Source: Octopus vulgaris (lineage: Eukaryota). From it: a stretch of 62,000 nucleotides of DNA. The notes under the pieces are model-generated. The model made no database searches, was not told the origin of the DNA, and saw only the letters and a program-made list of their open reading frames with translations. The stretch is from NCBI GenBank assembly GCA_951406725.2, contig OX597817.1, positions 87,936,001 through 87,998,000 on the forward strand, in the 5' to 3' direction. Below, piece after piece: positions 1 to 62,000 of the stretch. How positions within the stretch are numbered: position 1 is the first letter of the stretch; each line of letters starts with the position of its first letter. Position numbers and translations under genes: made by a program.

Positions 1-336
1 CACCTACACCCAGATATATCACTGCAAACAATAACTCTTTACTTGAATGGGTTATGGTACCCAAAAGATGACTGTAATATGAAACATCATTAAAATGTCT
101 TTTCTAGATGGTGCTATCAAGTTAGTCATAGCTTGAGCCAATTCTGGCCAAAACTTTTTTAAGTATCCAAGTACGTATATATATATACATAGGCACAGGA
201 GTGGCTTATAGGTGCAGGAGTGGTAAGTAGCTTGCTTACCAACCACATAGTTTTTGGGCAAGTGTCTTCTACTATAGCCTTGGGCTGACCAAAGCCTTGT
301 GAGTGGATTTGGTAGGTGGAAACTGAAAGAAGCCCG

Positions 337-338
<2 letters not shown>

Positions 339-385
<47 letters not shown>
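339..385. repeat. (TA)n microsatellite
   Basis: Direct read; similar tracts at 2610-2646, 12175-12250, 13372-13405 and 29820-29868. Confidence 0.95.
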
Positions 386-387
<2 letters not shown>

Positions 388-1299
388 AATAAATGAAAGA
401 ATGGAGTTGAACGATGAATTAACAAAATTCCTTTATTTTCGACATATGTTTCGAAGGCTGCATATTCCTAATTTTGAAGGAATAAGGGGTGCATTATGCC
501 GCCTTCTCATCAGGAAAAGCAAGGAACTTATGTCAGCATCAAGATGCACAAAAACTTTTAGATGACTGCCCACACAGAGCCCATAGCGATAATGAGTGTT
601 TCTTTAAAATATTCCGTTATAAGCAGTGACGTCAAAAATGGTTGAATGTAGAAGATTCTAGAAGGTTCAAGGTTGGAGGGGGTAGGCCTAAGAATAGGAA
701 GGTGATAGGGTGCAGGTCATATGAATGGTGATTTTGTTGTTTTCTTTTGTGAATGAATGCCTATGTTTGTGTATGTATATAACTGCATTAATGTCTGTGT
801 GTGTGTATGTGTGTGCGTGATTGTGTGTGTGGTTGGGTAGATGCCAAAAACAGACAGTGGTGAAGTGACAGGTTTGTGTCTGTATGTTTGATTGTGCTTA
901 CGATAAAGAGAGGGAAAGAGAGAGAGAGAGGAGGGGGAGGTAGAGAGACAAAGGTAAAACATACCTCAATGGATTGGGTAGTAGTCCTTTAAGAGTATAA
1001 AAATTGACTATGGGGGTGATATATAAATGGGATTATATTATTAAAATTCAAGGAGGTTATCTATATTAATCATTATTCATATGAGTGAAAGGTGTGTTTT
1101 TGCCAGTGCATGCACCTAAAGGTTTTCTCGACCATTGTATTTATTAAAGGAACTTTGGCGAACAATATATGGAAAAGTTCGGAATTACAGACGCCACAAA
1201 ATTTTCTGCCCTTATCAAATGGAAAGGATACCGACAATATGGACCATTCCAGCCTGAAAGTTGTATTGCTGTCCTTAAGACGCCAAACTAATTTACTTA
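383..1299 (-). mobile_element. Penelope-like retroelement 3' end (left arm), inverted copy
   Basis: Reverse complement of 1312-2229 with about a dozen substitutions and four small indels by eye; ORF 1073-1519(-) mirrors 1092-1538(+). Confidence 0.85.
428..526 (-). ncRNA. Type I hammerhead ribozyme (PLE-associated), mirror copy
   Basis: Minus strand reads TTCCTTGCTTTTC-CTGATGA-GAAGGC...GCCTTC-GAAAC-ATAT-GTC|GAAAATAAAGGAA; all core positions intact; predicted cut between plus-strand 441 and 440. Confidence 0.88.
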
Positions 1300-2376
1300 A
1301 CAGCACAGGACTAAGTAAATTAGTTTGGCGTCTTAAGGACAGCAATACAACTTTCAGGCTGGAATGGTCCATATTGTCGGTATCGTTTCCGTTTGATAAG
1401 GGCAGAAAATTTTGTGGCGTCTGTAATTCCGAACTTTTCCATATATTGTTCGCCAAAGTTCCTTTAATAAATACAATGGTCGAGAAATCCTTTAGGTGCA
1501 TGCACTGGCAAAAACACACCTTTCACTCATATGAATAATGATTAATATAGATAACCTCCTTGAATTTTAATAATATAATCCCATTTATATATCACCCCCA
1601 TAGTCAATTTTTATACTCTTAAAGGACTACTACCCAATCCATTGAGGTATGTTTTACCTCCCCCTCCTCTCTCTCTCTTTCCTTCTCTCTATCGTAAGCA
1701 CAATCAAACACACAGACACAAACCTGTCACTTCACCACTGTCTGTTTTTGGCATCTACCCAACCACACACACAATCACGCACACACATACACACACACAG
1801 ACATTAATGCAGTTATATACATACACACACATAGGCACTCATTCACAAAAGAAAACAACAAAATCACCATTCATATGACCTGCACCCTATCACTTTCCTA
1901 TTCTTAGGCCTACCTCCTCCAACCTTGTTTGAACCCTTGAACCTTCTAGAATCTTCTACATTCAACCATTTTTGACGTCACTGCTTATAACGGAATATTT
2001 TAAAGAAACACTCATTATCGCTATGGGCTCTGTGTGGGCAGTCATCTAAAAGTTTTTGTGCATCTTGATGCTGATATAAGTTCCTTGTTTTTCCTGATGA
2101 GAAGGCGGCATAATGCACCCCTTATTCCTTCGAAATTAGGAATATGCAGCCTTCGAAACATATGTCGAAAATAAAATAAAGGAATTTTGTTAATTCGTCG
2201 TTCAACTCCATTCTTTCATTTATTTGTATTTAAAAAAACACACAATTTTCCACACGAAAGCACGTGATCTCTGCCCTAGGCATGTAGCTTCAACCGTGTT
2301 TTTCTGACGTGAATTTGCTACCCAGGTATCGGTTAACCGAATTATCCATAATAAGATAATTCATTCAACTACTCTT
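1300..2376 (+). mobile_element. Penelope-like retroelement 3' end (right arm): GIY-YIG endonuclease C-terminus + pLTR with hammerhead ribozyme
   Basis: 1299-1538 reads NSTGLSKLVWRLKDSNTTFRLEWSIL...CGVCNSE...INTMVE...RCMHWQKH*, the typical tail of PLE GIY-YIG domains (T.LS..IW.LK...W.I...C..C..E...LN...E...C.H..K), followed by a UTR with a hammerhead at 2081-2184. Confidence 0.85.
2081..2184 (+). ncRNA. Type I hammerhead ribozyme (PLE-associated)
   Basis: TTTTC-CTGATGA(2094-2100)-GAAGGC...GCCTTC-GAAAC-ATAT-GTC(2164-2166)|GAAAA: complete catalytic core; stem I TTTTC/GAAAA, stem II GAAGGC/GCCTTC, minimal stem III with palindromic ACATATGT. Confidence 0.88.
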
Positions 2377-2601
2377 ATATATATATGTATGTATATGTTT
2401 GTGTGTTTCTGTTTGTCCTCTTAACATCGCTTGACAACTGATGCTGGTGTGTTTGCATCCTCGTCGGTTAACGGTTCAGCAAGAGAGACCAATAGAATAA
2501 GTACTGGGGTTGATTTGCTTGACTAAAGGTGGTGATCCAGCATGGCCACAGTCAAATGACTAAAACAAATAAAAGAAGTAAAGAATAAAAGAATATATGT
2601 A

Positions 2602-2649
<48 letters not shown>

Positions 2650-2960
2650 CATATATGTGTGTGTGTCTGTATCATGTAAAATGCTCTCATTCTGGTGCTA
2701 CGTAAACTCATCCAACATGCAAAATGCACCCAGTACACTTTGTAAAGTGGTTGGCATTAGGTAGGGCATCCAGCCATAGAAACCTTGCCAAAATAGACAA
2801 TTGGAGTCTGGATAACTCTCCAGTTGGCAGCTCCTATTTAACTATCCAACCCATGCCAGCATGGAAAACAGATGTTAAACAATGATGATGATATATATGA
2901 ACATATATAGCTGTAATTGAATGGAATGAACATTTACTCTCTCACCTCACTTATCTGTTC

Positions 2961-2994
<34 letters not shown>

Positions 2995-3355
2995 GGCATA
3001 GGAGTGGTGTGGTAGTAGCTTCCTTACCAACCTCATGGTTCCGGGTTCATTCCCACTGTGTGGCACCTTGGGCAAGTGTCTTCTACTATAGCCTCAGGCC
3101 GACCAAAGCCTTGAGTGGATTTCGTAGACGGAAACTGAAAGAAGCCCATCATATATATGTATATGTATGTGTGTGTGTATGTTTGTATATGGTGGTGTGT
3201 TTACATCCCCGTAACTTAGCTGTTCAGCAAAAGAGACAAATAGAATAAGTACTAGGCTTACAAAGAATAAGTCCTGAGGTCGATTTCTCGACTAAAGGTG
3301 GTGCTCCAGCATGGCCACAGTCAGATGACTGAAACAAGTAAAAGAGTAACGAGTA
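2995..3355 (+). mobile_element. SINE family A, full copy
   Basis: GGCATAGGAGTGG head with A/B-box-like motifs, internal TA/TG tract, AAAAGAGTAA tail; repeated throughout the window. Confidence 0.85.
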
Positions 3356-3844
3356 ATACACACACACACACACACACACACACTTTTCACCAGTTGTTAT
3401 TCTTAATAGTATCCAATCCCTTATGGAGCAAGTGTATATGTATTTTCAATTGGGTTGGTTGAAGCAAGCAGAGCTGTTAAAACTAAACTGGAATTTCAAG
3501 GTTGAACTTTTCACTTGAGGATTCAGATTTTTGTATTCTATAATAATTTTCATATTTGATAAGTGATTAGCTTTTCCTTGGTATTTGATTTAATAATTAA
3601 ATGCTTTGCTGATCAGTAAGATCATCGTTCACTGCATAAACTACCAGGAGACTCAAATCCTCTACTCCATTCACTGTCAAATCTCACCTCAACAAAAAAC
3701 ACTATTCTTAATTTTGTAAATTTTCCAAGCTATTAAACCCCATCATTCACAGTTTTATGTTCTGCACTATCAAAAGTACTTGGAGACAAAAATTGGTCCA
3801 GTCAGTGTGATGTGGAAAATGCTAAAACATCAAAGATAAAGTTC

Positions 3845-3995
3845 TTTTACTTTTTTTCTTTTTTTCTAACTTGTTTCAGTCATTGGACTGTCGCCATGCT
3901 GGGGCAACACTTTGGAGATTTTTGTTGATTAAATCAATCCCAGCGCTTAATGTTTAAGCCTGGTTCTTATTTTATCAGTCTCTTAGGTTGAACTG
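3845..3995 (-). mobile_element. SINE family A, 3' fragment
   Basis: CTTGTTTCAGTCATTGGACTGT..CCATGCTGG reverse-complement tail. Confidence 0.65.
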
Positions 3996-4123
3996 CTTAA
4001 TTACTAGGAGGAAAACGACCCAACAAAGGTTGTCAAGTAGTGTAGGTGGACAAACACACACACCTCACACATATCCATCCATGTATATATATATATGCTA
4101 GCATGGAAAACAGACGTTAAACG

Positions 4124-7970: not shown

Positions 7971-38836
<30,866 letters not shown>

Positions 38837-44351: not shown

Positions 44352-44664
44352 TCAAGGTGTGAGTGGAGGTAAATTCACTGCCCAATAACCTTTGTGAGAA
44401 TAAAAAGAACGTGCTAGATATTCCAAAAGTTTCACGGAATCATGGAAAACATTGGCCGGGTTGACAACAAAATCTGAACAGTAGTTTATAGTAGTTAACA
44501 ATGAACAATACTGTCGGTTAGTTTTAAGGTTTCGGAGGGCATTCAGTGCTTGTTTACCAGGTGAGTGCAATACAATAGACATCTCTGGATGAACTCGTAA
44601 AGTCAGATCAGGGTGGAGAGTGGTTTGCAGAAATACATACAAAGCACGACAGGTGAGCCGGAAT
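44352..44664 (-). CDS. EPG5: EPG5 last coding exon (FRLTCRALYVFLQ...KQALNAL...stop)
   Basis: tttcag|A TTC CGG...TGA at 44352-44354. Confidence 0.92.
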
Positions 44665-47600
44665 CTGAAAACAAATACAAATTATTATTACACACCAATT
44701 AATTATATTTCATTAACAAGTATACATGCACACAATGGCATACACCTGTATATGAGTATGAGAATATTCTTAAATAGAGTTGAACTTCTGTAGTGACTTG
44801 TGATAATAAACTTGAATTCAGCTTTCAAAAGCACTCTAGTAAATAGCTTTGAATGCATGTGCAAAATTATATGAGCTCCGTCATAAATTTACTAAACTGG
44901 AGGCAGCCAATCTATGTTCTACTTCAGACCTCTTCATTCTAGTCTTTGAAGTAATATATCATCATCATTATTATTGTTTAATGACAACTTTTAGATATTT
45001 GCATGGGTCAGATGGAATTTGTTGCAGATATTCTACCATCACAATGTCAATACTTAACACACAAACATATACATATATTTACATACACACATATATATAT
45101 CAGGCTTCTTTCATTTTCTGACTACCAATACTTTCATCAAACTGGGGCTACAGTGGGAGACACTGGCCCAAGATGTCATGCAGTGGGACTGACCACAAGA
45201 CCACATGGTTGAAAAAAAGTTTAACAATATGGCCATATAAATACATACACATATATACCTACACATATATACACATATACATAATATACAAATATATGTA
45301 CATGCATATATACATATGTATATCTGTATACGTATGTGTGCCTATATATGCATGAATACAAATATATATATACACACACACACACACACATATAAATATA
45401 TATATATATACACACGCATTTTCCTTTACTTGTTTCAGTTACTGGACAGTGGCCATGCTGTGGCCTTGAAGAGTTTAGTCATTCCTAGTAATTTTCCTTT
45501 TAAGCCTAATACTTATCTTTTCAGTCTCTTTTTGCTGAAACATTAGGTTTCAAGGTCATAAACAAACCAGCACCAGTTGTCAAGTGATGGTGGGAGACAA
45601 AGACATACATACATACATACATAGATATACATAAGACATGCTTCTTTCACTTTCCAGCTATCAAATCCAACCACAAGGCTTTCATCAGTCTGAGGCTACA
45701 GTAGAAGACACTTGCCCAAGGTGCCATGCAAGATGACTGAACATAAAACAAAATGAGATGGACAAACTAGGATGAACAAGGAATACATCCATCTAATTTT
45801 GTTTTGTTATGTTTTGGTCATATTCCCAACAAGTTCTCTTGCTGGTTACCTCCAGGGTGGAAGTAATATTATCAATAATGGCATGAAATTGCGCCTGACC
45901 CCCGCTGACCAATAACTGATGAGGAGTTGGTGACCTTCTGTGTTTGTTCTCTGTTCATCTGTGCATTTAGTGTATGGTTTTCGACTTGACCTTCTGTGTC
46001 TTTTTTCCGTTTGTTTGTTTATTACTATACATGTTTGACTTCTGAAAATATTATAGGCGTAGGAGTGGCTGTGTGGTAAGTAGCTTGCTTACGAACCACA
46101 TGGTTCCGGGTTCAGTCCCACTGCGTGGCACCTTGGGCGAGTGTCTTCTACTATAGCCTCGGGCCGACCAAAGCCTTGTGAGTGGATTTGGTAGACGGAA
46201 ACTGAAAGAAGCCCGTTGTATATATGTATATATATATATATGTGTGTGTATGTTTGTGTGTTGTGTTTGTCCCCACCAACATCGGTTGACAACCAATGCT
46301 GGTGTGTTTACGTCCCCGTAACAAAAGAGACCGATAGAATAAGTACTAGGCTTACAAAGAATAAGTCCTGGGGTCGATTTCCTCGACTAAAGGCAGTGCT
46401 CCAGCATGGCCACAGTCAAATGACTGAAACGAGTAAATAGTGCAATACACTCCTTATTTTTGACCTATACACACACACACAAATACATAAATATATATAC
46501 AAGCATTAGTACAAGAAAACTATTATTGTTCTTAAATCTCTCAATGAGAGATATTCAGTAGCAGCACTTGAAAGTAACAACGATTATTTGCCAATCTAAT
46601 GTGGCAGTCCCATTTGGGGTGAATGCTATATGACACACAATCTGTGTCCTTTATAGACATGCATCACATCAGATTGGCAAATAATCGTTACAAGAAAACT
46701 ATTATCACCAAACTCCATTATTAAGGGAAAAGTATGCCTTACTTGATGGACAAAGTAGACCTTCTGCCTAAACCAATAGCTCCAAGGATACCAGTTGTGT
46801 CTTTATCTTCAGCCAATGGAGTCAACATGTGAATGAATGCTGATAGTATCTGTGCAATGTCTGTAGTGGAACAAGTCTTATTCTCCAGTTGAGAAATCAT
46901 CTGACAAAAGCATTTGTGCCACCACAGTAGCATTTTTCCTTCATTGTCACTACTAAAGAGATAAGGAAAGAAATTTAACAAAATGTCAAAACTGAAAGAT
47001 GTACATTTTGAAAAATGTAGAATGTAGGATTAAGAGAATGTTGGAAACAGAATGTCTCCTGTAAGCTTGTATACAAGGGGGTACTGAAAAGTTCTTGGCT
47101 TTAAGGGTATCACAAAAGGCCTGGTTGGAGGCCCAATCTTCTGAGTTCTTTTCCAGGGCTTAGAAAAATTGAAAGCCTACTGCAGTAGGTGTGTGACTCA
47201 TAATTAATTGCAATAGGTGTGTGAATGATAATAAACTGATCCTCCTGTATTTTCTTTTACCCAAAGCCAGGAACTTTTCAGCATCCTCTCATTGTAATAG
47301 AATTACTTTCCAATTGAGATAGAGCAGATAAATACACTGATGTTAGTGAAATGCCAAAAGTGAAAATAATAAAATTTTGCATTAAATAGTAAGTTAAAAT
47401 TTTTGACAATCAATCAAAATATTTCTTTCAAATTTTGGCACAAGGCCAGCAATTTTAAGAGGAGGGGGAAGTTGGTTACATCAAACTCAGTACTTGACTG
47501 GTGAAAAGCGTGAAAAGCAAAGTCAACTTCGGCAACATTTGAAGTCAGAATATAAAGTGTTGGAGGAAATGCTGCTAAGCATCTTGTGCAATCAACCAAA

Positions 47601-50600
47601 ATATTAGTTTTAAATTTTGGCACAAGGCCAGCAAGTTCAGGGGAGGGGTAAGTCAATTACAACGACCCCAGTGATCAACTGGTACTTACTTTATCGACTG
47701 CAAAAGGGTGAAAGGCAAAGTCGACCTCAGTGGAATTTGAACTCAGAATGTAAAGACAGACGAAATGCAGCTAAGCATTTTACTCAGCATGCTAATGATT
47801 CTGCTAGCTCACTGCCTTCCAATCAACCAAAATATTAGTATTTAGAACTTTTTATCAGATTGAAATAGACTCAAAAAAATGGAAGGCTTACCTAGATTTT
47901 CCTTTTGTACTCCATTCCAGCACTTTCCAAATGACAGCTTGTTCTTCACTACAGTCAGTTGCTGAGGAGAGCTGTTGTAGGAGGTAAGCATGGAGTGTCA
48001 GGAATGCACCTTGCTGTAGACATTCTTCAAGAAATTCAGCCAGGTTCAATTCAGGAATTTGAATATTTAACAAAATAATGTCCCAGTTACTCTTTTGGAA
48101 GCTTCCATCTGTTTGAGATTTAATAAAAGATGAATGCAGATTTAATCATATGAAGCTAGCAGTATGCAGTAAATTATACCTATACATGTATGCGTACATA
48201 TTTTGAACACATAAACACAAATACTCAAAGATAAATAGTTTGGTTCATTAACTATATCATATAACAATAGAACTTCAGTAAAAAAAAAGAACCTATAGCT
48301 TATAAACCAATGGAAGCAAGCTTTATCTGTTGCCTTCAGTAAGGCAGGAACATTCTTCTTTGTAAGAAAATGTAGAGAGTTTCATGTAGTGATACAAGAT
48401 ATTGTGATTACAGAAACAGTGCAAGAGGCATGTAGATAGATAATGTCTGTGTGGAGTGTAAAAGAAGGGTGAAGGCTGGTAGCGAGTGTTGTTACAAGTG
48501 ATAGTAAACAGATTATTAATCTACAGAAGAAAGAGTATAGGAGACTGAACCAAATCCTGACACAAACCAGAGTTAATATAATGGGGGTTGGGGAGAGAAC
48601 CATATTGATATATATATATATATATATATATACATTATGATGAAGCACTGAAGTGGAAAGAATCAAAGGAAGATAACTTTTTCACATCAAGCATAAGTAT
48701 GAAAATTCTGCTGACATCAAGATAAACAACATTACTTTTGCCAAATTGCTCAAATACAAAATACCCATGTCCAGAAAATTCACTGTAAACATTTTTGCAA
48801 TGGGAAATTTCACCATAAAGAAGGCACGTAAGCAGACTGTAAACTAGATAACTCATTTTAAAGAAATTATCTTTTGCTAATTGGTAGGTTAGTTGATGAA
48901 GCAGCCATTTTTAAAAAACAGCTATTTTTTTTTTTTTTTTTCAATTTACTTTTTACTTTTTTTCCAACATATTTTCCTGCAGTTAAAATGTTTATGATGA
49001 ACTTTCCTATAACCCAAAATACCTGCCAGTCTGTTATGCAAAAGGAAGTCTTCAGTATTACCCTTAATACCCACAAAATACAATTTATCATGAGACTCAA
49101 CACCTCATTGGCAGATTTACTGATTTAGCATCATATTTAGATTTATAAATGTTAAGAAGATAATTTTTTGTATTAACTAACCTGAAGTGAAATAAACATC
49201 AACACATTTCTCTAAAATTTGTACAACATTTGTAAGACTAGCCAAAGAACGACAAGCAGCAGCAATGGCTGGCATTAATAGTATGCTGTGGATGGAGGAC
49301 TCTAACCAGCTGTAAATGGTACTGGTAATTAGTTCACTGATTGTTCCTTCTGGATTACAATTATTCAAAAGACTATACACAGTTTTCATCATCTCCACGG
49401 ATTCCTCATTTTGCACATATCGATCAGCAACTGGAAATATATTAGTAGAATAATTAGAGTTTAACAATAAAACATTACAGTAGAACAATATGTAGTAACA
49501 GTTATAGTACATCAATGCTAAGAGATAACCACTTAATTGTAAACAAGCACCCGGGTGCACTACGACTCAGCAGCAAAGATTAAAAGAGGAGACAGCAGCC
49601 ATTTGTCAAGTAAAGACAACAATGAAAGCTAAACGTGCATGCAAACTAGCCAGAATAAAACATAAACAGATACTAAAAGAGCCATAAAGAGGAAAGATTA
49701 CATAAGACTTAAGATTTCACCAATTTGGTGATGCAGCTTGTGAGACTGATTGGACAGTGGTAGACAGGGATGGTGTAGTTGCTTTTTTTCAAACAGGGGA
49801 ATAACTCTTGCAATTTTCCATACATCTCTCCACAAGTAAACAGAATTGCAGAATAGTTTGACAATAAAGCATTATAGAAGAACAGTATGTAGTACCAAAA
49901 TAGTACATCAGTACTGTCAAATAATCACCCAATTCTTATACATCTCTCTACAAGAAGTAAAATTTCAATATCTAGACAATCAATTTAATTTATATGAAAT
50001 CATTACTTAGCAGCAACCTGACACAAACATTAACCAAATTTAATTAAACATAATGTTTTATTTTGTTTTGAATCTTTATTTAAGCAAGTTATATAGAGAC
50101 TTTAGGATTAAATGCTGAGATTAAATAGAAAATTAAAGAGAATTTAAGTGCCATATATTTCTGAAATGAGTTTCTCACTGAAATAAAGCTGAAATGAGTT
50201 TCTCACTTAAATGATTTATATATGAAAAAGAAAACTTCCGGTCTTATTTAATAAATAATAATAATAATAATTGTGTACAGTGCTCAGGTGCACTACAACT
50301 CATCTAAAGTGTATATATAATCAGGTGTAGTTTCGGCGGATTTCGGAAAGCATGAGGGCCTTAAAAGATGCAGTGTCATGGCAGTCAACAACTGACGCAG
50401 GCAGTTTATTCCATGCTTCAGCAATTCTGAGCGTGAAAAAATGTTTCCGAAAGTCATGGGAGCTGTATTGTTTTCTGACTTTGTAGGCATGTCCACGTGT
50501 GTTAGACACATCTCCATATTGTCACTATTTCATAAACTATTAAATGTGACTCAGATAGATAGGTTGTTTATTAATAGAAGAATCATTAATGCTGTGAATA

Positions 50601-53600
50601 TCTTATCAAAAATACTTGCAATGGCTCAGGTGACTTAACTATAAATAAATACTATGGACAGGTTCCACATACTACTAGAAACCTCAAGAGACAGGCAACA
50701 CAAACTACTCAGCCCTCCTACTTACATATCTACAAATATATATCGCTGAGCACATATACACACACACACACAGCTGCAACTATTGGTTACCATTCTATTT
50801 TGCACATAGATAACATCTATGTCTACTGTCTCCTATCCTCTATTTAACAGTAAGCACCTGTGGATTTATAAAATAACCAAACAATTTCAAAACAACTTGC
50901 TACACAAACTTATTAGGAATTTACATTGATGAAAAGAAATCAGTTTCTCCTTCCTTACCTGCCATCTCAACTGTTTCTATTTCAGTCAAGATATTAAGGA
51001 TGCTGTTACTGAATGTTTCTTCATTTATATCATCCTGGTAAGAACACTGGCAGAGAAGCTGGATCACGCAGTACACATAACCAACTCTCTTCTTACTAAT
51101 TTCACTGTTCCAATGAGCAGAACTGTCACAGTCAAATTTTGAGGCAGATTTAATCAAGCTAGAAATAGAAATGAATTTCTCTTTAAAGACAAAATTTCAA
51201 AAAGAAACAAATTTAAACATAAGTTATTGATACTGTATTGCAAAGAACAAGATTAACTGATTGGTATGCAATAGCTAACTTATCAATCATAAAATAATGG
51301 TTTCAAATTCTGGCACAAGGCTATCAATCTTAGGTGAAAGGATAGTCAATTACATCAATGCAAGTGCTCAGCTGGTACTTATTTTATTGACCCTAAAAGG
51401 ATGAAAGGCAAAGTTGACCTCAGTAGATCAATCATAAAATCTTTCTTAGGATTCTTGTAGAAAACGGGATGACAATTTTCTACAGATCAACAATGTGTAT
51501 CTCAATTCCAATATCCTTCACTGTCTTAGGTAGCAGTGTGGGTGTCATTCTAAGTGCATTAATTACCACAGAAAAGTTTTTCACCTTTGTGTTCCATAAT
51601 CTCTACAACTCTCTGGCTAGGTCCCGATATTTCTCACTTTCTTGGGTATCTACTCTATGGTATTGAAAACTTATGATCTTACACTGTTTTTCTTTTTTCT
51701 CCTTTTGTCATCTACAATTATATCTGGCTTTCTTACTTCAATAGTATAGTCAGTTTTTATGAAGATATCCCATAAAACCTTCTGATTGTTTTTCACTATC
51801 ATAATCTTTCTAGCTTGTGTTCATATCACTTTTCTGTAACTATGAATCCACACTTGGTTAACATCTCAATGCACTCTTTTACCAACACAGTTATGCCTAC
51901 ACCTATATTCTTTTTCTGAACTCGCTTAAGACATAGTTAATACTTTCATCTCCTTCAACACAGATTCTGCATTTGCTTTCTGTCTGCAAATAAAGCAGTA
52001 TCATCAGCATACTCCCCATTTTGTCATGGTTAAATGATGACAGATAGTAGATTTTGTAAGAGTGAAACTAAGTTTTTAAATTTTGTCAAACTAAGATACA
52101 AAAGCCATAGTCCAAGTTGACAACAACTGAGAATGATGTAAATGTAGAAGATATTGGTCTAGATGCCAATGCCTCAAAGACAGCAATACATCTGTTACAA
52201 TCAACAGTATTCAATAAGCACAATGAAGCAAAACTCTCTAAAATCAGCAAAGGCCTTTATGTATTTAGGGAATAACATTGCATCTTCAGAAAACAATGTG
52301 AAAATTCATTTTGTGAAAGCATGAACTATTGATGGCTGCAAAGTCATCAGGAAGTCATTGCTTACTGATGATTTTAAGAGAATCTTCTTCCATCTTACTG
52401 AGGAATCAGTGATATTGAATGGGCCCAGTGCTTGAACACTTACCAAACACCTGGGAGCAAGGTTTGATGGTGCTTACATCTGCATTTTATGTGCCATTCT
52501 GAATATCTCATAAAAAATGCATCTGACCAAAGAGACAGTATGGCAATATTCTTGCAATTATTCAATGCAATTAGAGAGAGAGAGGTATTTGTTTTGTAGG
52601 ACATTACTAGAGAGCTAAGCAAGAACTTGTTAATGATATTCTCTATGGACACTCTGACAGGGATATACATGGGTTGATTGGCCAATTAAAACCTTGATTG
52701 ACCAGCTCTGTACAAACACATGTACCCCTTTTTACCTGCTGATTGCTATAGGGCACCGATGATCAAATCAGGCCAAACCACATCAAGTTTGAACTTATTC
52801 CAATAATTTTGGATGTTTTTAAAACACAACTGATAGAAATAATCTTCATTTTGGATTTTATACTGTATGGGGGGTGTTGAACTATTTACATGTCTACCTC
52901 ACATTGGTGTAAGACAAAGTCAGTTTTTTTAAAAATTGATTTTTTTTAACTGTGTAATAATTCAATGAAGCCCACCTGTTACATAGGAACTGACACCACT
53001 TTAAAAAACACACACAAATAAATTAATAATTTTGAACAGAGCAAGAACGCTGCCCAACAGACAAAACCAAAACCAAATAACATTACACAGGGAGACTTTC
53101 TAAATGCAGGGAATGAAACAAAGGATAACATTTCAGAAAAACCAAAAAACCAGTAGCTTGATAAATAACATGTTTGACAACATTTATATACACACCCCAA
53201 AAAAAGATACACACATCATCAAACAAAAGCTTTGAATGCAGGTCACACCCTGTCACTGGCAAATGCACTTGTAAATGAAAGCACTTTTATTTTCACGAAA
53301 ATAACAAATGCATGGCAACATTATGTCACAAGAACAAGTGCTTCTCTACCTGAAACTATCACTCAGGCATGAGAGAAAAGGAAAATAACTTACCTATGCT
53401 TTGCCAATACCACAGGGGTTTTCCTGGTGCCCTCCACAAAGAGGCAGCCTTTGTAGATACATGAAGCAAAATGTCCTTCATAGGGAGAAGGAGGTCATAT
53501 AACACAACATGCATTGTTTTTAAGACTGAGGACAAGTTGAGAGCATGGGATATGACAGTAGTTAAGAGAGTAACACACCTATCAATAAATGGGTCTCATA

Positions 53601-54975
53601 GTATTTGGGACGGAGTTAGTTATAACATCAACCCTTAGCTCACAGTTACGTTTATAGCATAATTGAGGCAGGAGGGATCACTAAGTCATACTAGTCCTCA
53701 TGACTCTACAAGACCATAAAATGGTCTAAGAATTATAATTTGTGGTAGGTGTCAAAAGAAAGACTCTCAAAAACTGATTTTTCAGAAAAGAGACCCATTG
53801 GTACCCATGCAGCAGCAACAGTCATTTAAGAGCTTTCCTTCCAGCAGAGCTGAAAGGAAGAAAGCATACAAACAGCATGAACAAAGGAGATTTAGGCATC
53901 GCCCAATATTTCTCTCCATGAATGTCTCAAGCAAAAGTATTAGATGGAGCTCTTTCCACCACAGAAAAAGTTTAACACTGCAAGTTAAAAAAACACTCAT
54001 CTGTTTTACAACACTGCTGCTCTTCACAATGAAGAATTGTTGCTAAAGATTGAACTGTTTGAAAGTTAAGTATCTAAGAGACAATGCCATGATGCTGACA
54101 AGGTGAAAACTACAAACTTCAAATCTCTATCAATCATCTTATTTCTTTATTGCCCACAAGGGGCTAAACATAGAGGGGACAAAGAAGGACAGACAAAGGG
54201 ATTAAGTCGATTACATCAAACCCAGTGCATAACTGGTACTTTATTTATCGACCCCAAAAGGATGAAAGGCAAAGTCAACCTCGGTGGAATTTGAACTTAG
54301 AACATAATGGCAGACGAAATACCACTAAGCATTTTGCCTGGCGTGCTTACGTTTCTGCCAGCTCACCGCCTAAACTCTATCAATCATCTTGGCTATCTGT
54401 GACTCTCTCAGGAACAATACATGAAATAAAACTGAAATTAGCGTAAGTTGATAGCCTGACTGACATTTTATTGTTGCATTGATAAAACAATGTATCAACC
54501 ATCTTTATTAAGTTCATTTAGTAGAGTTCAAGATTCAGGATTGCGTTTTCAAAATGTTTCTTGATTTCTTCTAACAACAAGCCCTAATATATAACTGACA
54601 CATGCTGAACTCAGAGGAATCAAAATTAAAGCTGAATACAGCAAGATTTTTAACTCAGATTTAGAGGTCACCACATTTTCCTTGGTAATTGTCTTCATTA
54701 TTTAAATGATAAACCTTGACTAAAAGCAAAAATTAAAATCTCACTAACCGTAGTTCCAATGCCTGTAAAGATGACCTCTGTGCAAGAATTGCTCTTGGAT
54801 CACAGTGCTGTAGATACCAGTTGACTGACTGGCTGAAACTATTGGAATCTAAGTAATTCCAACATAACTTCTCAGCCATCATAAACATTAGTATTACTTC
54901 TTCAGTCTGGAAGGAATCAAAACAGAAAACAAACTAAAACAAACTGCAAATCAGGGGAGGGGGAGGGGAGGGAAG

Positions 54976-55045
<70 letters not shown>

Positions 55046-58000
55046 ATTTCTGCTGTAGGCACAAGGCCTGAAATTTTGGGGGGAGAGGGCTAGTCGATTA
55101 TATCAACTCCAGTCCTCAACTGATACATATTTTGAAGACCACAAAAGAATGAAAGGTAAATACAAATAAATGACCTAATGTAATACCAGACTCTCCTGGT
55201 AATATGTACATGTTTTGTCTTGGTGTAAAAGATGGGCTATCGCAAATATTCAGCTCAATATCACAGATTTGCTTGTCAGTTACTTGACCATAACAAGTTG
55301 AGCGTATCCTTTAGTGGCGGACGATATGTGCATCTTTGATCATGAGCAGGAGTATCATAGCTATGAGCTGAGAGTGATTCTTTGGGGTTTGAATAATTCA
55401 CCCCTGGAAACATGGGTGTTTCATTCCTTAAACAAACTTATTCAGAGACCTTTTAAGAGGGATGGGCTACTCAACCTGAAGAAAATTCTAACAGGGCTCT
55501 CATCTGCAAGGTCATGTGCTGTTTATTTTGATATGAAGTCACCATGTCATGCGCATATGGTTGTGATGCATGTACTCTTATCAGACGGGTAATCATGATG
55601 GGTATATTGGGCTTTATATATTTGGCACTTTGATGGTATGTGCTGTCCTTTCACTCAATAATAATGGTTTCGAATTTTGGCACAAAGCCAGCAATTTTGG
55701 TGGAAAGTGTAAGTCAATTGCATCAAACAGTGTTCACCTGGTATTTATTTTATAAACCCCAAAAGGACAAAATTCAAGTCGACCTCAGCAGAATTTGAAC
55801 TCAGAACATCAAGAAGGACAAAATGCTGCTAAGTAATTTGACTGGCATGCTAGCAATTCTACAAGCTTGCCACCTTAATAATAATAATGACAATTTTGAT
55901 CTGTAAATAATATATTTGATAATAATTTAACTATTTTTCATTTCTTTGTTTTAATATAAATGTCTCTCTTTATCAACAATTACTTTATTGTTTGTAAAAA
56001 AAGATAGAATAATAGTGTATAGCCAATACAACCTGGTATATAACTGGTATACATTTATGCACCCTAAATGATATGAAGAGACATAAGAAATTGAGCTCAA
56101 TATTATCAAGATTTTCATATATCACCAGATATGTATACATGGAAAATACTTACAAATGATAAAAAACTTTCTTTATCATCTCCAGCAAGTTGCAAGAATA
56201 AATGGAAAAGATGTGCAGCAAACTTGGATACAATATTTACAGGGTAATTGCTGATGAAATCCTGCATTGCATTTGCCCAGTTGACATGAGGGGCAATTAC
56301 TTTCACAAGCTGGAAGCTTTCTATGTTACCATTATCACGAATCTGTCAGATGGACACAAATACATAAGATAATTAAAAATAATAATGGCAATAATCATGA
56401 GTATTACTGCCATTATGAAATATATATAAAGCCATTCTTAGAAAACAATCAATAAATTGTTAATATTTTAAAGCATTATTGGATGATTTTAAATCACTGT
56501 AATCAAATGTACTTTTGTGAGGTTTTTATCAAATAAAAAACATATTACAATCACAAAATACTCAATCAGAAAATAAATTTTAAACCTAAAATCTTCAATT
56601 ACAAATTTTATAAACTTTATACTCTAATCAAATATTACCAACAAATTAACTTCTATATGTCGTAAATTGTTGACAATGTTACTTTTATAGATGGTCACCA
56701 CTTTTTATAGCCACGTTTTGTTACCATTTGTGTAACACTACTTTTATATCATCATCATCAACAACAATTAACATCTGTGTTCCAAGCTAGCATGGTTTGT
56801 TCAAGGCTTGCACTGAGCTCCAAAGTCTGCTTTGGCATGGTTTTTACAGCTGGATGCTCTTCCTAATACCAGCCACTTTACAGCATGGACTGGGTGCTTT
56901 TTTTGTGCTACCTGCACTACTGAGATTGTCATGTAGCTCTCAGGACTACAAACCTTAGTAGTGGTGGGGTGTCAGCTTCATGCTAGGGGATGAGGAGATT
57001 TCTATGAGCAGAGAGGGGCTACTACCAAAAATATGTTAATAATAATTTGTGATATTTTCTCAATATATTTATCATGGAAGTGAACATATCCAGATAAAAA
57101 CTGCAGTTGACTAGTCTGCCAACACAAGGTTGTTCTAAATAGTTATGCAACTTGCATGCAGGAAACACTGTTCTTTTAGACTTTATACAAACAAACTCCT
57201 TGCAGTAGAATTAGAGAATGCATGAGACAAATTCCTTTAACATTTCTGTTATTCCTCTCTAGCTCTATAAAGCTAATTAGCATCAAATAGTTATTCCTAT
57301 TCTATATGATTAATTTTATCATTAAAATGAAAATAGTAAAACAAGAGATATTTATAGTTAGAGTAAATGTAGCAAAAACCAAAGTAATAGTAAGCAGCAA
57401 GGCATACTCAGCACACACCCCCTCGGGTAGGTGGTCCTGCTCAATCTGTAGGAAAGGTACAGGTAGAAACTCCATAAGATGCACCCAATGTAAGCTATGG
57501 ACGCATAAGAGGTGCAGCAACATTAAAGGGAAATTAACAGATAAGATAGCTTTCATGTGCGGCAGATGCACAGGGGCAATAGACACAACAGACACTCAGA
57601 AAACAGATTCCATCACACTCCAGGGAGAGAAACTAGAAGTAGTTGATAGTTTCCGCTACCTGGGTGACCAAGTTAGTAGCGGAGGTGGATGCACAGAGAG
57701 TATCACCACTAGAATACGAATAGCCTGGGCAAAGTTCAGAAAGCTCCTACCCCTACTGGCGGCAAAGGGTCTCTCCGTCAGACCGAAAGGTAGATTGTAT
57801 GATGCATGTGTGCGAACTGCCATGCTTCACGGTAATGAAACATGGGCTGTGACTGCAGAGGACATGCGTAGACTTGAAAGAAATGAAGCTAGCATGATCC
57901 GCTGGATGTGTAGTGTCAGTGTGCACGCACGAGAGAGTGTAAGCATCCTGAGAGAAATGCTGGATATAAGAAGCATCAGATGTGGTGTGCAAGAGCGACG

Positions 58001-61000
58001 CTTGCGATGGTATGGTCATGTGCTGCGGATGGATGAAGAGAGATGTGTGAAGAAGTGCCACTCCCAAACAGTTGAAGGTATCAGGGGGAGAGGTAGACCC
58101 AGGAAGACATGGGATGAGGTAGTCAAGCATGACCTCAGAGCATTGGGCCTCACTGAGGCAATGGCGAAGGACCGAGATCTCTGGAGATATGCTGTGACTG
58201 CAAAGACCCGGGCTGCTTCCTGCATCAGTTCCACATAGCCCCTGCCCATTCAAAGTACCCCGGATCCCAGATAGTCCTGCTGTGCCTGAGGAGATCTGTT
58301 GAGTCAAGTACATGAACATGAACGTCGAAATAAATATCAATGGAAATAGGAGTTATGATGCCTGTGCCGGTGGCACATAAAAAGTACTATCCGAACGTGG
58401 CCGATGCCAGCGCTGCCCCGACTGGCCTCTGTGCCGGTAAGACCATCTGAATGTTGCCAGCGCCGCCCTGGCTGGCTCCCGTGCCGCTGGCACGTTAAAA
58501 GCTCGAACCGATCGTGACCAATGCTGGACCCCCCGGCCCCTGTGCAGGTGGCACGTAAAAAGCACCCACTCCACTCGCGGAGTGGTTGGCGTTAGGAAGG
58601 GCATCCAGCCGTAAAAACTCTGCCAGATCAGACTGGAGCCTGGAGCGGCCCCTGGCTTCCCAGACCCCGGTCGAACCGTCCAACCCGTGCTAGCGCGGAA
58701 AACGGACGTTAAACGATGATGATGATGATGATGATACATGCTAAGATTTAAATTAAAACTCTGTTTCTAAACAATAAATCAGATTCTTAAACAAGGGTTT
58801 TACTTACAGTTGACATTGTTTCTGCAACCTGCAAATCAATTGTAAGTTGATCCCATGGCAACAAGGCCAATTCAACATTCAGTAACGTAACACAATAAAC
58901 TGGTATCTTTCTCGATGCTAATATAGAGGTATAGAAGATCCACAGCCGTCCAAGTATGTCTTGGGTTTGTGAGTAAGCTACAGGTGATAATAAAGCTGTA
59001 AAGAAAGAAAACACAACAGTAATTAAGAGTCTTTTAGTGAAGCATTCAAAAGTAAATCAAGTGTAAAGGTACCCTGGCAGGAAGGTTTCTGATAAATGAA
59101 ATACAACCAAAAGATGTTTCATAGTATTCTGAATTAACTGGAAACCTAACGTGACAACAACAGACACCTTCTTCATAAAGAACTCAAAATGCAACTGAAG
59201 ACCTCTCCTAATCATTCTGGTTCTGATACAATACAAGTCAATAAAGCAATCCAAATATTAAAAAAAAATCTTACAAACAACCATTCAGAAGCCACATGAA
59301 AGTATTTGAAGGCAGTATTATATGTAATAAGGAGAAATTTCAAACTATAATTCCACTACCAAAGAAGGGTAAACCTCAGCACAGTCACATCCATTGATGC
59401 ATCGAGACAACATTAATCACTGATATTATATCATCATCATCATCTTTCATATCATTTAATGTCCATGTTCCATATTGGCATTAAAAGATCCACAGATATT
59501 TCAGAAAAGCCTGTCTCTACAGTAAAAAAATCTTCATTGAAAATTAAAGTTCAAGCCTATTAGTCATCATGGTAATAGTCTAGATTTTAAAAACCTGTGA
59601 GACTGACAGAATCAAAAGAAAAGTAAGTTTGTCAATGTTAGAACTTACATTTTTTTGATAATGTTTTAATCATCCATTCCTATATAGGAGCAGTTGGATG
59701 ATTTTAAATCATTGTAATCAAACGTAGAGAACATTCTAGATATAACAAAATCATAAACTTTGAGATTATTGTAAACAAAAACCAAAACAAAAAAAAAGCA
59801 GAATATCATTTTTTAATTACGATTTAATTTAAATATGTCTAATTACAAAAGTTAATTTGTGGCACAAAACAATGCTAAAAATCATAGCTAGGTAAATCAA
59901 TTACTTTACTTTCCATTCTAAATCAAATACAACAAAAACTTACATTTATAAAATGTGTGGATATATCGGATTGCATCACAGAAGTTTTGAACCATTATGG
60001 TAGCAGCCTCATGGTCACCAGCTGTCCAAGGGATCAGTAATTGAGTCTGCGCTGGTCCTTTCAATGGCCTCACCCAAGGACTGAACACATTTACTATCAT
60101 ATTCCATAAATAATCAATCACTAAAAAAAAATATAATATATAAATTATGAACACAAAAGAAAATCAATACAACATCAATACAAATCAATACATAAAACGA
60201 TAAAGTAAAGTTCCCAGCAAGAATGTGAAACAGTTTCAATTCCTAGTAATAGCCTATTCAATTTGACTATGACACTAATGAGTTTAAGTTAATCTCATTT
60301 CCTATGTTATTTACATTGGAACTAAGAGATCAATATTTTAAATGTGTTTTGTTTTGCTTTTTAACCCTTTAGAATTCAAACCAGCCATATCTGGCCCAAT
60401 TATTCTACCTGTTTTATGTTCAAACCAGCCAGATCCAGCCTCTCACACCTACCCTACAATGTCATTCTAAAGTAGACAATCACATCATTGAAACCTCAAC
60501 GCCATAAGATAATGCATGATTAATTGAAAACAATGTGAATAAATAAGCAATACATTTGATCGAGCAATCTGAATACTAAATAGAATATTTTTTGGTAAAA
60601 ATTATGATATAGTTAACTAATTTTTAGTGATATCTATTTTAACAACCTTATGAAAATGATAAAAAATAGGTAGGGAATCAGATCTGACATATACCTTAGT
60701 CAGCTTGCTTCCTGGTTTCTAAATCTGCTTGACACCTAAATTTACAAAATTAATTAAATCTTTGTTTTAGATTGCTCACTAAAAATATAGTTTTGTTATC
60801 ATCATTTGAACTGGTTTGGTATATTGCGGTTCCTGAACTGAACTGGTTTGGCATACTGTAGTCTGCCATCTTATCTATTATGCCAAACATCTCCAGATCT
60901 CATCACACCAATTCTACCCCCATCTCTTCCTTGGTCTTACCCCAACCACTGCCAGTATACAGCACATTTTTACACTGTAAATTTTATTAAGAGTTTACCA

Positions 61001-61684
61001 GATAAAGAAATGGAGGTTATCTTTACTTTTAAGCATCATTGAGAGTTGAATTAACTAGTAAATGTTACTAATCAGTAGGTTTAGGCTAAAAAGAAACTGA
61101 TAGAACTTAATATGCAGCATCATCATTTAGCATCTGCTTTCAATGCTGCATGGGTTAGATGTTTGACTGGAACTGGTAAGCCAGAGAGCTGTACCAAGCT
61201 CCAGTCTGTTTTGGCCTGGTTTCTAGGGCTGGATACCCTTCCTAATGCCAACTACTCTACAGAGTGTACTGGGTGCACTTGTGCCTTTTATATGTCATCA
61301 GCATGGGTGCCTTTTATATGTTACCAGCAGTGGCCATGACTAATACTTGATGAAAAATTTTAAGATAAGCAGAAGGGTACCCAATAAACATTCCACACTA
61401 AGATTGAAAAATTCCATATTTTAATTCATGAGTCATATTTCATTCGAACATAAATTTTTAACCAAATTTACTACCACCAATATTAACTTACCCTGAGCAG
61501 GTGATTCTTCTGAAAGATTTTCATGATATTGAGCTGCTAGAATTTTTAGAAAACCAGCACTGATGGAAGCAATATACGGCACATATTTATGCCATTTGGA
61601 ATAGAGACCAAATGTACAGCTTTCTTTATTGAGTAGTCGTTGTTCCATAAAGAATGATGACATCATCTCAAGAATTTGTGCGAG
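44352..61684 (-). CDS. EPG5: EPG5 (ectopic P granules protein 5, autophagy tether), 3' 10 coding exons, 697 aa C-terminal part
   Basis: Minus-strand exons 61492-61684, 59944-60120, 58808-58995, 56154-56342, 54749-54906, 50959-51158, 49182-49430, 47892-48108, 46743-46952, 44352-44664 join in frame (2094 nt). Motifs FGLYSKW..YVPY, VFSPW, IQIPEL...FLEECL, LLWWH, GILGAIGLGRRS and KQALNAL match EPG5 in order. Confidence 0.93.
45420..45740 (-). mobile_element. SINE family A, diverged copy
   Basis: TTACTTGTTTCAG tail to GAAGACACTTGCCCAAGGTGCC head segment. Confidence 0.75.
46056..46437 (+). mobile_element. SINE family A, near-intact copy
   Basis: GGCGTAGGAGTGGCTGTGTGG (A box)...GGTTCAGTCCC (B box)...GACTGAAACGAGTAAA. 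Confidence 0.88.
46743..46952 (-). CDS. EPG5: EPG5 coding exon (EGKMLLWWH...GILGAIGLGRRSTLSI)
   Basis: ctttag|T AGT...ATC AA|gtaagg; tandem TAGTAG acceptor. Confidence 0.93.
47072..47292. mobile_element. Mariner-type MITE
   Basis: TIRs TGAAAAGTTCTTGGCTTT (left) and AAAGCCAGGAACTTTTCA (right); TA at the left end. Confidence 0.72.
47415..47820 (-). mobile_element. Two adjacent SINE family B copies; the 47609-47820 copy has a 19-bp TSD
   Basis: AATCAACCAAAATATTAGT at 47590-47608 and 47821-47839. Confidence 0.85.
47892..48108 (-). CDS. EPG5: EPG5 coding exon (WDIILLNIQIPELNLAEFLEECLQQGAFLTL...)
   Basis: aaacag|AT...TCT AG|gtaagc; phase 1 to 2. Confidence 0.92.
49182..49430 (-). CDS. EPG5: EPG5 coding exon (...LLMPAIAAACRSLASL...YFTS)
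   Basis: ttccag|TT...TCA G|gttagt; AAC.SLAS motif. Confidence 0.92.
50250..50512 (-). mobile_element. CR1-like LINE 3' end with (ATT)n tail
   Basis: ORF 50321-50509: TRGHAYK...RKHFFTLRIAEAWNKLPASVV....SFK. Confidence 0.85.
50959..51158 (-). CDS. EPG5: EPG5 coding exon (LIKSASKFDCD...ILNILTEIE)
   Basis: ttctag|C TTG...GCA G|gtaagg; phase 2 to 1. Confidence 0.87.
51440..52000 (-). mobile_element. R4/Dong-like (restriction-like endonuclease) LINE C-terminal fragment
   Basis: Minus strand: KCRIC..GDESINYVLSE, KVLWDIFIKTD..I..RKPDII, EKYRDLAREL, VINAL. Confidence 0.68.
52130..52760 (+). mobile_element. Degenerate RTE-type RT/3' fragment
   Basis: IGLDANASKT, FMYLGNNIASSE, FDGAY..IL.AILNIS motifs with stops. 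Confidence 0.62.
54141..54374 (-). mobile_element. SINE family B variant with alternative 3' tail and 16-bp TSD
   Basis: CTCTATCAATCATCTT at 54125-54140 and 54375-54390; tail AGCCCCTTGTGGGCAATAAAGAAAT. Confidence 0.85.
54749..54906 (-). CDS. EPG5: EPG5 coding exon (TEEVILMFMMAEKLCWNYLD...CDPRAIL)
   Basis: ttccag|ACT...CTA CG|gttagt; phase 0 to 2. Confidence 0.87.
54973..55043. repeat. Compound (GAA)n(TAT)n microsatellite
   Basis: Direct read. Confidence 0.95.
55045..55875 (-). mobile_element. SINE family B copies (55045-55160 partial; 55665-55875 full)
   Basis: Reverse complement of the family B consensus; another partial copy at about 51300-51425. Confidence 0.7.
56154..56342 (-). CDS. 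EPG5: EPG5 coding exon (IRDNGNIESFQLVKVIAPHVNW...)
   Basis: gacag|ATT...TTT|gtaagt; phase 0 to 0. Confidence 0.87.
57356..58735 (+). mobile_element. RTE-clade LINE, 5'-truncated, with PHD-like finger in RT, 3' UTR and (GAT)n tail
   Basis: ORF 57306-58238: VNVAKTK, C4HC3 finger, LEVVDSFRYLGD, LRWYGHVLRM, RGRPRKTW; 3' UTR ends GGACGTTAAACGATGATGAT. Confidence 0.9.
58808..58995 (-). CDS. EPG5: EPG5 coding exon (LLSPVAYSQTQDILGRLWIFY...LPWDQLTIDL)
   Basis: ttacag|CT...ACT|gtaagt; phase 1 to 0. Confidence 0.88.
59944..60120 (-). CDS. EPG5: EPG5 coding exon (IDYLWNMIVNVFSPWVRPL...PWTAGD)
   Basis: ttttag|TG...AAA T|gtaagt; phase 1 to 1. Confidence 0.9.
61492..61684 (-). CDS. EPG5: EPG5 coding exon (LAQILEMMSSFFMEQRLLNKESCTFGLYSKWHKYVPY...)
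   Basis: ttccag|CTC...CAG G|gtaagt on minus strand. Confidence 0.88.
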
Positions 61685-62000
61685 CTGGAAAAAGACATAA
61701 TGAAAATTTATGATAATAATAAATTAAAACCTATAAAATAAAAGTAATGCTTTGATTGTGATGAAAATAGATTTTTATTGTAACTACTTTGAAGAATCTA
61801 CAAAAAGTACTGAGCAGCTGACACTTGTGATAACATCATCTTTCTGGACAACCTGAAAAAACTGGCTTTTAGGCTACATTAACCTTTACAAGCAGTAGAT
61901 TAGAGACAAGTAATTGAAGACCAGAGTCATTTATATCCCAACTTTTAAGTGTTGTGAAGAGAATCATAAACAGAAAGAGAAACAACTCAAACCAACAGAA

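Follow-up and report, generated by a model that had tools for sequence, protein, structure and literature searches.

The genome of Octopus vulgaris carries, in an intron of the TBC1D32 (broad-minded) gene, a near-perfect palindrome of 1.85 kb that consists of two copies of one retrotransposon 3' end placed head to head. It occupies positions 383-2229 of the 62,000-nucleotide (nt) stretch analysed here (assembly GCA_951406725.2, contig OX597817.1, positions 87,936,001 to 87,998,000 of the forward strand), which is called the window in the following. The palindrome probably originated when a Penelope-like element (PLE) of the Hydra clade inserted once into the (TA)n microsatellite of a repeat that resembles short interspersed elements (SINE-like), with both strands of the target acting as primers. 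The octopod family of this clade is new, and the structure itself is of a known kind.

Anatomy of the palindrome and of its insertion site

A repeat search resolved the palindrome into four collinear inverted blocks (380-1299 against 1312-2232) that are 96-99% complementary. Global alignment of the arm 383-1299 with the reverse complement of 1312-2229 gave 14 substitutions, of which 11 are transitions, and four indels, namely 2 nt (917-918) and 14 nt (938-951) extra in the left arm, and 12 nt (1928-1939) and 5 nt (2176-2180) extra in the right arm. The near-perfect palindrome with arms of about 917 nt, which the original prediction had described by eye together with these substitutions and indels, is thereby confirmed. 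An inverted repeat of 917 nt at an identity of about 98.5% cannot be a chance occurrence.

The 12 nt that were first read as a spacer do lie between the arms, but they are not foreign. Positions 1300-1311 (ACAGCACAGGAC) are conserved directly 5' of family position a1 in 25-27 of 27 aligned copies, and a comparison of 5' flanks showed that other copies read ...ACAGCACAGGAC|TAAGTAAATT across arm position 1. Since these 12 nt precede arm position 1 in other copies, they are element sequence and not a spacer. The right copy hence starts at 1300 and the left copy ends at 1299; the right copy is longer by 12 nt at its 5' end, and the junction contains no filler.

The outer ends of the two copies are different. 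The left copy (383-1299, minus strand, a1-a918), as delimited by repeat search, alignment and copy mapping, is the 5'-truncated 3' end of a PLE, and it stops at a canonical short 3' end that sits directly on (TA)n without a tail. The body of the right copy (1300-2229, plus strand, a-11 to a918), which is conserved in other copies, continues past 2229 into a 3' extension of about 150 nt. This extension, the PLE tail (2230-2378, plus strand, TTAAAAAAACACAC...TTCATTCAACTACTCTT), belongs to the right copy only, and it is found in 22 other copies of the family at 93-98% identity.

The sequences on both sides of the palindrome are the two halves of a single SINE-like repeat. The left half (151-337) is followed by a (TA)n microsatellite (338-382), and the right half (2421-2600) is preceded by a (TA)n(TG)n microsatellite (2379-2420); these microsatellites represent the left and right remnants of the target site. 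The halves are separated only by a microsatellite of about 40-60 nt in at least five uninterrupted paralogues within the window (~3068-3356, 30445-30758, 31128-31320, 35370-35686 and 46133-46437). As the flanks are halves of one repeat, the segment from 383 to ~2378 is a single unit inside its (TA)n. The window contains many such SINE-like repeats with an internal (TA)n/(TG)n microsatellite, which offer ready landing sites for a PLE that targets (TA)n.

Comparison of the arms with 27 other copies of the family confirmed that they have diverged within the genome, as had been proposed. Thirteen substitutions out of the 14, like the two long deletions, are derived changes confined to a single arm: four substitutions and the 14-nt deletion in the right arm, and nine substitutions (three of them CpG to CpA) and the 12-nt deletion in the left arm. 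The family itself is variable at the sites of the one remaining substitution and of the indels of 2 and 5 nt. The sequence shows short direct repeats bordering each of the 12-nt and 14-nt deletions. The arms also have 13 non-consensus states in common, one of which occurs in none of the 27 other copies. Their divergence from each other is 1.78%, against at least 1.97% to the next copy, so that they are narrowly each other's nearest neighbours, and pairwise divergence among the other copies ranges from 2.2 to 10.6% with a median of 5.7%. This mutual proximity, set against the spread of the other copies, places the dimer among the youngest insertions of the family, and it must have been born with identical or nearly identical arms. 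The arms would since have decayed neutrally to a divergence of about 1.5-1.8%, with slippage accounting for the deletions between short direct repeats.

Long palindromes can also be made by fold-back replication errors and by chimeric long reads. The structure might then be a later inverted duplication of a single copy, produced by replication template switching, or an artefact of the assembly. The duplicated segment would, however, need to start exactly at the canonical short 3' end and to exclude both the tail and the flank. An assembly fold-back artefact is unlikely because the 14 substitutions and four indels are mostly private derived changes of one arm, unlike sequencing-type errors, because the tail of the right-hand outer end has no counterpart on the left, and because the same architecture is common at unrelated loci, as described below. 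A later duplication or an artefact is therefore a highly unlikely source of the palindrome.

A Hydra-clade family in the octopus genome

A search of the genome for further copies had been proposed with the original prediction, and it returned thousands of family candidates, most of which are 5'-truncated. The right arm was used as a DNA query against the 2.8-Gb genome of the species itself. The 3' arm gave 3702 first-look candidates against 218-267 for the 5' region, which indicates heavy 5' truncation. The 48 arm matches that were scored are 89-96% identical, and most of them span all 918 nt. In collinear matches the distance from the start of the 5' region to a918 is about 3.0 kb, to which the tail adds about 0.15 kb.

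Two alternative 3' ends are in use within the family. The long end, in which the copy runs past a918 into the conserved extension of about 150 nt, is found in 16 of 28 other copies and in the right arm of the window; the tail terminates ...TTCATTCAACTACTC(AATT/TT)ATAT and then passes into (AT)n. The short end, which stops at a918 directly on (TA)n, is found in the other 12 of the 28 and in the left arm of the window. The outer ends of nearly all family copies are adjoined by (TA)n. Some independent copies on different chromosomes share their 5' truncation points (L041 and L042 at a250, L022 and L023 at a-241), which hints at preferred sites at which the reverse transcriptase (RT) stops or jumps.

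The identification of the arms as 3' ends of a Hydra-clade PLE, joined by their 5'-truncated ends, is supported by the longer copies. The first reading of the arms as head-to-head Penelope-like 3' ends holds, in that RT-like and YIG..R..H sequence lies 5' of the arm region in longer copies. Their degenerate open reading frame (ORF) contains, in order, FDISSFYPSI, GLYRDD, FLDVTLNL..Y.PYHKPS..SNH, ..FYIGATT..R..H and CxxC-E-N-CxH. Only the CxxC-E-N-CxH stretch of the element ORF is kept in the arms of the window, and there is no RT sequence in them. According to ORF and alignment data, the remnant in the left copy (1073-1299, minus strand) consists of the last ~75 codons of the nuclease domain with a stop, and the remnant in the right copy (1300-1538, plus strand) consists of STG, 75 codons and a stop, corresponding to the C-terminal part only of a GIY-YIG-type endonuclease (EN). 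Both read ..FCGVCNSE..LIN..RCMHW, in which C35, E41, N54, C63 and H65 are invariant with four relatives and across a 78-member alignment.

The relatives were obtained with a query composed of RT-like and nuclease pieces of octopus copies. They are proteins of 570-806 aa (P0002-P0007; E 1e-35 to 1e-55), all of which carry RW[KRQ], DKT/DKS, CxCX5C and CxxC..E..N..CxH. The protein family as a whole comprises 24,477 representative clusters at E <= 1e-3. Columns Y..Y.G..R..H..E..N are invariant across the 78-member alignment, and when the 78 members were scanned singly with Pfam, GIY-YIG was reported in seven (best E 6.6e-6) and RVT_1 in three, with no other family recurrent. Sub-threshold GIY-YIG matches were given by an octopus copy (E 0.031) and by P0002 (E 0.012). 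DKT is present in the sole octopus copy that reaches this region (VQSDKTRNTY), and RW[KRQ] was seen only in the relatives, the octopus N-terminus being unsampled. The CxCX5C linker upstream of the EN, which in the relatives reads CNCRxxxxxCP, is not found in three longer octopus copies; an Asn-rich low-complexity stretch occupies its place, with stop codons and frameshifts nearby.

Predicted structures point in the same direction. The RTs of PLEs form the sister group of TERT, and TERT is therefore the expected best fold match of a relative. In agreement with this, the AlphaFold2 model of P0004 (pLDDT 95.6, pTM 0.91) matched TERT structures at ranks 1, 2, 5, 6 and 7 (E 4e-9 to 9e-8). For the model of a natural C-terminal fragment (pLDDT 92.8), the top matches in BFVD, a library of predicted viral structures, were nearly all GIY-YIG homing endonucleases (prob 0.9-0.99, E 0.017-0.1). 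The same fragment gave no significant fold match against PDB in Foldseek (best E 0.94), and a profile of the EN region found nothing significant among PDB sequences. A GIY-YIG endonuclease at the C-terminus of the element ORF can thus be assigned with moderate confidence.

By the original prediction, a profile search should place the ORF at 1299-1538 in the GIY-YIG domain of PLEs, and here the outcome is divided. Pfam gives no GIY-YIG match on the window ORFs alone, because no more than the final ~75 residues of the nuclease domain are retained, but each column of this stretch can be aligned to the CxxC-E-N-CxH end of the family EN. A match of a window ORF to KDM6_GATAL (E 0.006) is a weak zinc-motif match and was treated as noise from the CxxC motif.

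These features can be compared with those of the Hydra clade of PLEs with a C-terminal EN, which was defined by its motifs and for which (TA)n targeting and a short unit are also listed (Craig et al. 2021; PMC8557442 section 11). The octopus family resembles it in that CCHH is missing, the conserved E and N of the nuclease have CxxC and CxH on either side, (TA)n serves as target and the unit measures about 3 kb; DKT in place of DKG is seen in the single octopus copy that extends that far. The clade has been reported in Mollusca among other aquatic invertebrates (PMC8557442). It differs in three respects. Hammerheads are reported in the clade, whereas none was detected in the sequences examined here; the sampled octopus copies have the Asn-rich low-complexity stretch in place of the CxCX5C of the relatives; and the octopus has thousands of copies, the first-look candidates for the RT exceeding 10,000.

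The latter count was obtained with a 210-aa RT query against the genome. In copies that are 90-98% identical to the window family, the frame that includes the RT segment is open over 693-833 aa, and likely full-length, possibly recently active relatives would therefore be present in the genome. A sister family, with 82% aa identity in the RT, is represented by dozens of copies with identical scores and stop-free frames of 899 aa. Some of these copies lie in same-strand arrays with RT segments spaced 3622-3625 bp apart (C1:119516387-119524258, C24:21625736-21629981), which suggest the tandem organisation with pseudo-long terminal repeats (pseudo-LTRs) that is typical of PLEs, as well as recent activity. 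No direct repeat or pseudo-LTR was found at the palindrome locus. The sister family also includes RT-bearing minus/plus pairs, 497 and 798 nt apart (C6:69778569-69780312 and C8:37519741-37521785, respectively), from which it appears that long-armed head-to-head dimers are not unique to the window.

Inverted dimers and the origin of the palindrome

Hallmarks described for PLE insertions include an inverted partner truncated at its 5' end and a tail confined to one end (PMC8557442 section 6, Fig. 2). The statement of the original prediction that PLE insertions often include inverted partial copies is therefore well founded, both as a documented routine feature of PLEs and in the present family. 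When all loci were placed on a single reference copy, nine of 25 evaluable other copies, none of them selected for dimer architecture, had an inverted partner abutting their 5'-truncated end, and a tenth had a 50-nt copy-back piece. The partners at these loci are 31-498 nt long, and at the junctions the two copies overlap by 1-7 nt or are 4-20 nt apart. The palindrome shares with the insertions described in PMC8557442 heavy 5' truncation, an abutting inverted partner, a tail at one end and insertion in a microsatellite. It differs from them in the length of the tail (about 150 nt here, 30-40 nt there), in the lack of a direct pseudo-LTR, and in its near-equal arms, where a long copy with a short inverted stub is described.

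The outer ends of the dimers obey a simple rule. In all 11 dimers with both outer ends visible, the window included, the end of one arm falls at a908-926, and the other arm runs on to a1080-1104 and has the tail. The short and long ends are split 12:16 in single copies, so that about 49% of dimers would be expected to be discordant if the ends were independent. This pairing of one short with one long end in 11 of 11 dimers is an observation that PLE biochemistry does not predict.

Short self-inverted pieces occur near the 5' junctions of some copies. In L045 (5177-5206) 30 nt corresponding to a70-99 lie in inverted orientation immediately next to a70, after which the copy jumps to a787; in L038 (6374-6423) a piece of 50 nt lies 36 nt from the 5' end; and L034 (5490-5581) has an inverted internal fragment of 92 nt. 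These pieces look like the result of RT template switching onto nascent cDNA (complementary DNA).

Two independent insertions of the family in opposite orientation into the same (TA)n would also give inverted copies, and repeat landings are conceivable for a family that targets (TA)n and has thousands of copies. However, the 5'-truncated ends are not separated by (TA)n or any other target sequence, the truncation points are just 12 nt apart, and the arms are nearest neighbours with a shared private variant. Abutting inverted partners in nine of 25 copies are, moreover, far above what chance co-insertion would give. Two separate insertions are for these reasons scarcely credible.

For a single insertion the following course may be envisaged. 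The (TA)n target is self-complementary, and the GIY-YIG nuclease of the element would have cut it in both strands; the resulting 3'-OH groups would each have primed reverse transcription of the element RNA. The cDNA of the left arm would have begun at the internal short start site (a~918), and that of the right arm with its tail about 150 nt further 3', at the long site. Both minus-strand cDNAs would have halted far from the 5' end of the element, at a1 and a-11, respectively; their 3' ends would then have been joined without filler, and each would have been completed with the other as template. The outcome would be a head-to-head pair of 5'-truncated copies whose 3' ends face outward. The data show the anatomy, the membership in the family, the repeated occurrence of this architecture and the pairing of one short with one long end. 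We infer the order of events, as well as the reason for which the two cDNAs stopped 12 nt apart; both may have run off the end of a single RNA that was shortened at its 5' side, or, given hundreds of dimers, the small distance may be fortuitous.

The scheme is similar to the integration of the Poseidon PLE of Anolis carolinensis in vitro, where the protein cleaves each of the two target strands and extends it, the RNA has two internal positions at which reverse transcription begins, and the stretch from one to the other makes up the tail (Frangieh et al. 2024, PMC11167929). The AT-rich targets are likewise similar, and the model of two start sites and a tail fits the octopus ends. The Anolis element differs in belonging to the Penelope/Poseidon clade, in having an interval of 30-40 nt, and in showing no strand bias, as opposed to the dimers of one short and one long end in the octopus. 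The genomic evidence presented here nevertheless agrees with PLE integration as seen in vitro, with both strands primed, two RT starts, and a tail equal to the interval, and it extends this picture to the poorly known Hydra clade, which is very abundant in an octopod genome.

Twin priming of L1 elements, reportedly described by Ostertag and Kazazian in 2001, is said to use the second nicked strand as an extra primer in target-primed reverse transcription, giving an inverted segment. In L1 the 5' part is inverted without duplicated sequence, whereas in the octopus both arms carry the same 917 nt, and each arm must therefore have started close to the RNA's 3' end. An L1-like twin priming is ruled out on this ground.

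Copy-back, or snap-back, synthesis is another way in which one insertion could give two arms. A cDNA primed at the right-hand nick would have reached a-11, folded with a loop of 12 nt, copied itself outward, and rejoined the left (TA)n. The near-equal arms with their offset of 12 nt would follow from it, as would arms that must have been identical or nearly so at birth, and small copy-back signatures do exist in the family (L045, L038, L034). However, a strand copied from a tail-bearing cDNA should itself carry the tail or end arbitrarily, and the left arm instead ends exactly at the canonical short end that is used by 12 of 28 independent copies. Copy-back also cannot yield the rule of one short and one long end in the ten unequal dimers, which the window obeys, and no microhomology closes the proposed loop. 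Copy-back is thus a possible but unlikely origin of the palindrome.

Several points weigh against priming by both strands of the target in a single insertion. The arms of the window are offset by 12 nt, compared with at least 312 nt in the ten other dimers, and two independent cDNAs do not predict this; near-equal arms need an extra assumption under a model of two cDNAs. PLE start sites are used in vitro without strand preference (PMC11167929), which leaves the strict pairing of short and long ends unexplained. With regard to the element, the GIY-YIG assignment is of moderate strength, resting on sub-threshold or moderate scores with no PDB match by sequence profile or by fold, and the sampled octopus copies are without the CxCX5C linker and contain stop codons. 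A hammerhead ribozyme was not found by Rfam in window positions 1-4000 or in five 10-kb loci of longer copies, among which only one sampled copy reaches the 5' region.

Host gene and hairpin RNA

The original prediction had located the palindrome inside TBC1D32 from 463 aa of the protein found downstream, and this location is correct. Exons with Pfam BROMI matches lie on the plus strand 36-92 kb upstream of the window, and residues 846-1308 (463 aa) of the broad-minded protein of Octopus sinensis (P0001, 1308 aa) map to 7971-38833 on the plus strand, with exon identities of 84-100%. Protein mapping places the first exon downstream of the palindrome at 7971-8060 (plus strand; aa 846-875 of the O. 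sinensis orthologue). As exons of the gene are present both upstream and downstream on the same strand, the palindrome is intronic.

Other features of the window include a segment of 150 nt for residues ~1156-1211 of TBC1D32, which occurs twice on the plus strand (34470-34619 and 36923-37072), 97% identical and 2453 nt apart. The second copy is downstream of the next exon (aa 1201-1271, 36079-36291), which is not a simple tandem-exon order, and the repeated segment may be a duplicated exon or a pseudo-exon. An intron of TBC1D32 contains a run of non-LTR retrotransposon ORFs at 24504-26631 (plus strand), with a Pfam RVT_1 match (E 1.1e-7) at 25077-25550. At 57291-58235 (plus strand) there is an open frame of 315 aa with a PHD finger (E 2.4e-5), followed by sequence that resembles the C-terminal part of a retroelement ORF. 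Exon-like ORFs on the minus strand at 44355-61723 (e.g., 49180-49566, 47891-48145, 56118-56345 and 61436-61723) suggest a second gene convergent with TBC1D32; none of those at 44-62 kb has a Pfam match.

In RNA form the palindrome is predicted to fold into a long stem. The predicted fold of 383-2229 (1847 nt) has 895 inter-arm pairs and a minimum free energy of -1625.9 kcal/mol, and its longest uninterrupted helices are 231, 164, 116 and 102 bp. The transcript of the host intron would hold this hairpin of about 900 bp, a plausible candidate substrate of ADAR and, as the original prediction also proposed, a candidate source of endo-siRNA. Rfam gave no match at gathering score over the palindrome. 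Its best match, mir-581 at 1249-1362 (minus strand; 41.6 bits against a gathering score of 100), lies at the palindrome centre, where any perfect hairpin would produce such an artefact, and it is not evidence of a microRNA. The other Rfam matches in window positions 1-4000 are sub-threshold, microRNA-like noise from microsatellite hairpins.

A perfect-looking stem of about 900 bp within a transcribed intron, in an animal in which hyper-editing of double-stranded RNA (dsRNA) derived from repeats is exceptionally high (PMC5625713), could be taken for a selected hairpin-RNA gene derived from a PLE, such as a source of endogenous small interfering RNA, a microRNA-like locus or a regulatory ADAR sponge. 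The arms, however, show no compensatory changes, as each difference between them breaks pairing or makes a bulge, and their divergence equals that of the youngest ordinary copies. Rfam yields hairpin noise far below threshold only, and the locus resembles hundreds of others. A selected function of this kind has next to no probability; the palindrome is without a function of its own and is a routine by-product of PLE insertion.

The relevance of such by-products would lie in the abundance of dsRNA in octopus. Octopus is reported to show exceptional hyper-editing and to have an unusually large share of loci from which long, almost perfect dsRNA can arise, for the most part where inverted repeats lie close together (PMC5625713). 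The palindrome is similar to the inverted Alu-type substrates of ADAR in that two inverted repeat copies in one intron can pair into a long duplex (PMC5625713). It differs from them in that the pair would stem from a single insertion and has essentially no loop.

Elements that make their own inverted partner at insertion would supply ready-made long hairpins to introns, and this may help to explain the wealth of dsRNA-forming loci and of hyper-editing in octopus genomes. On a doubtful but possible hypothesis, the short and long ends of the dimers might, moreover, represent a strict rule of PLE integration in vivo, by which the two strands are primed from different start sites; about one third of the insertions of this very abundant family would then be born as hairpin dimers, and the clade would be a major source of the long intramolecular dsRNA behind the A-to-I hyper-editing of octopus transcriptomes.

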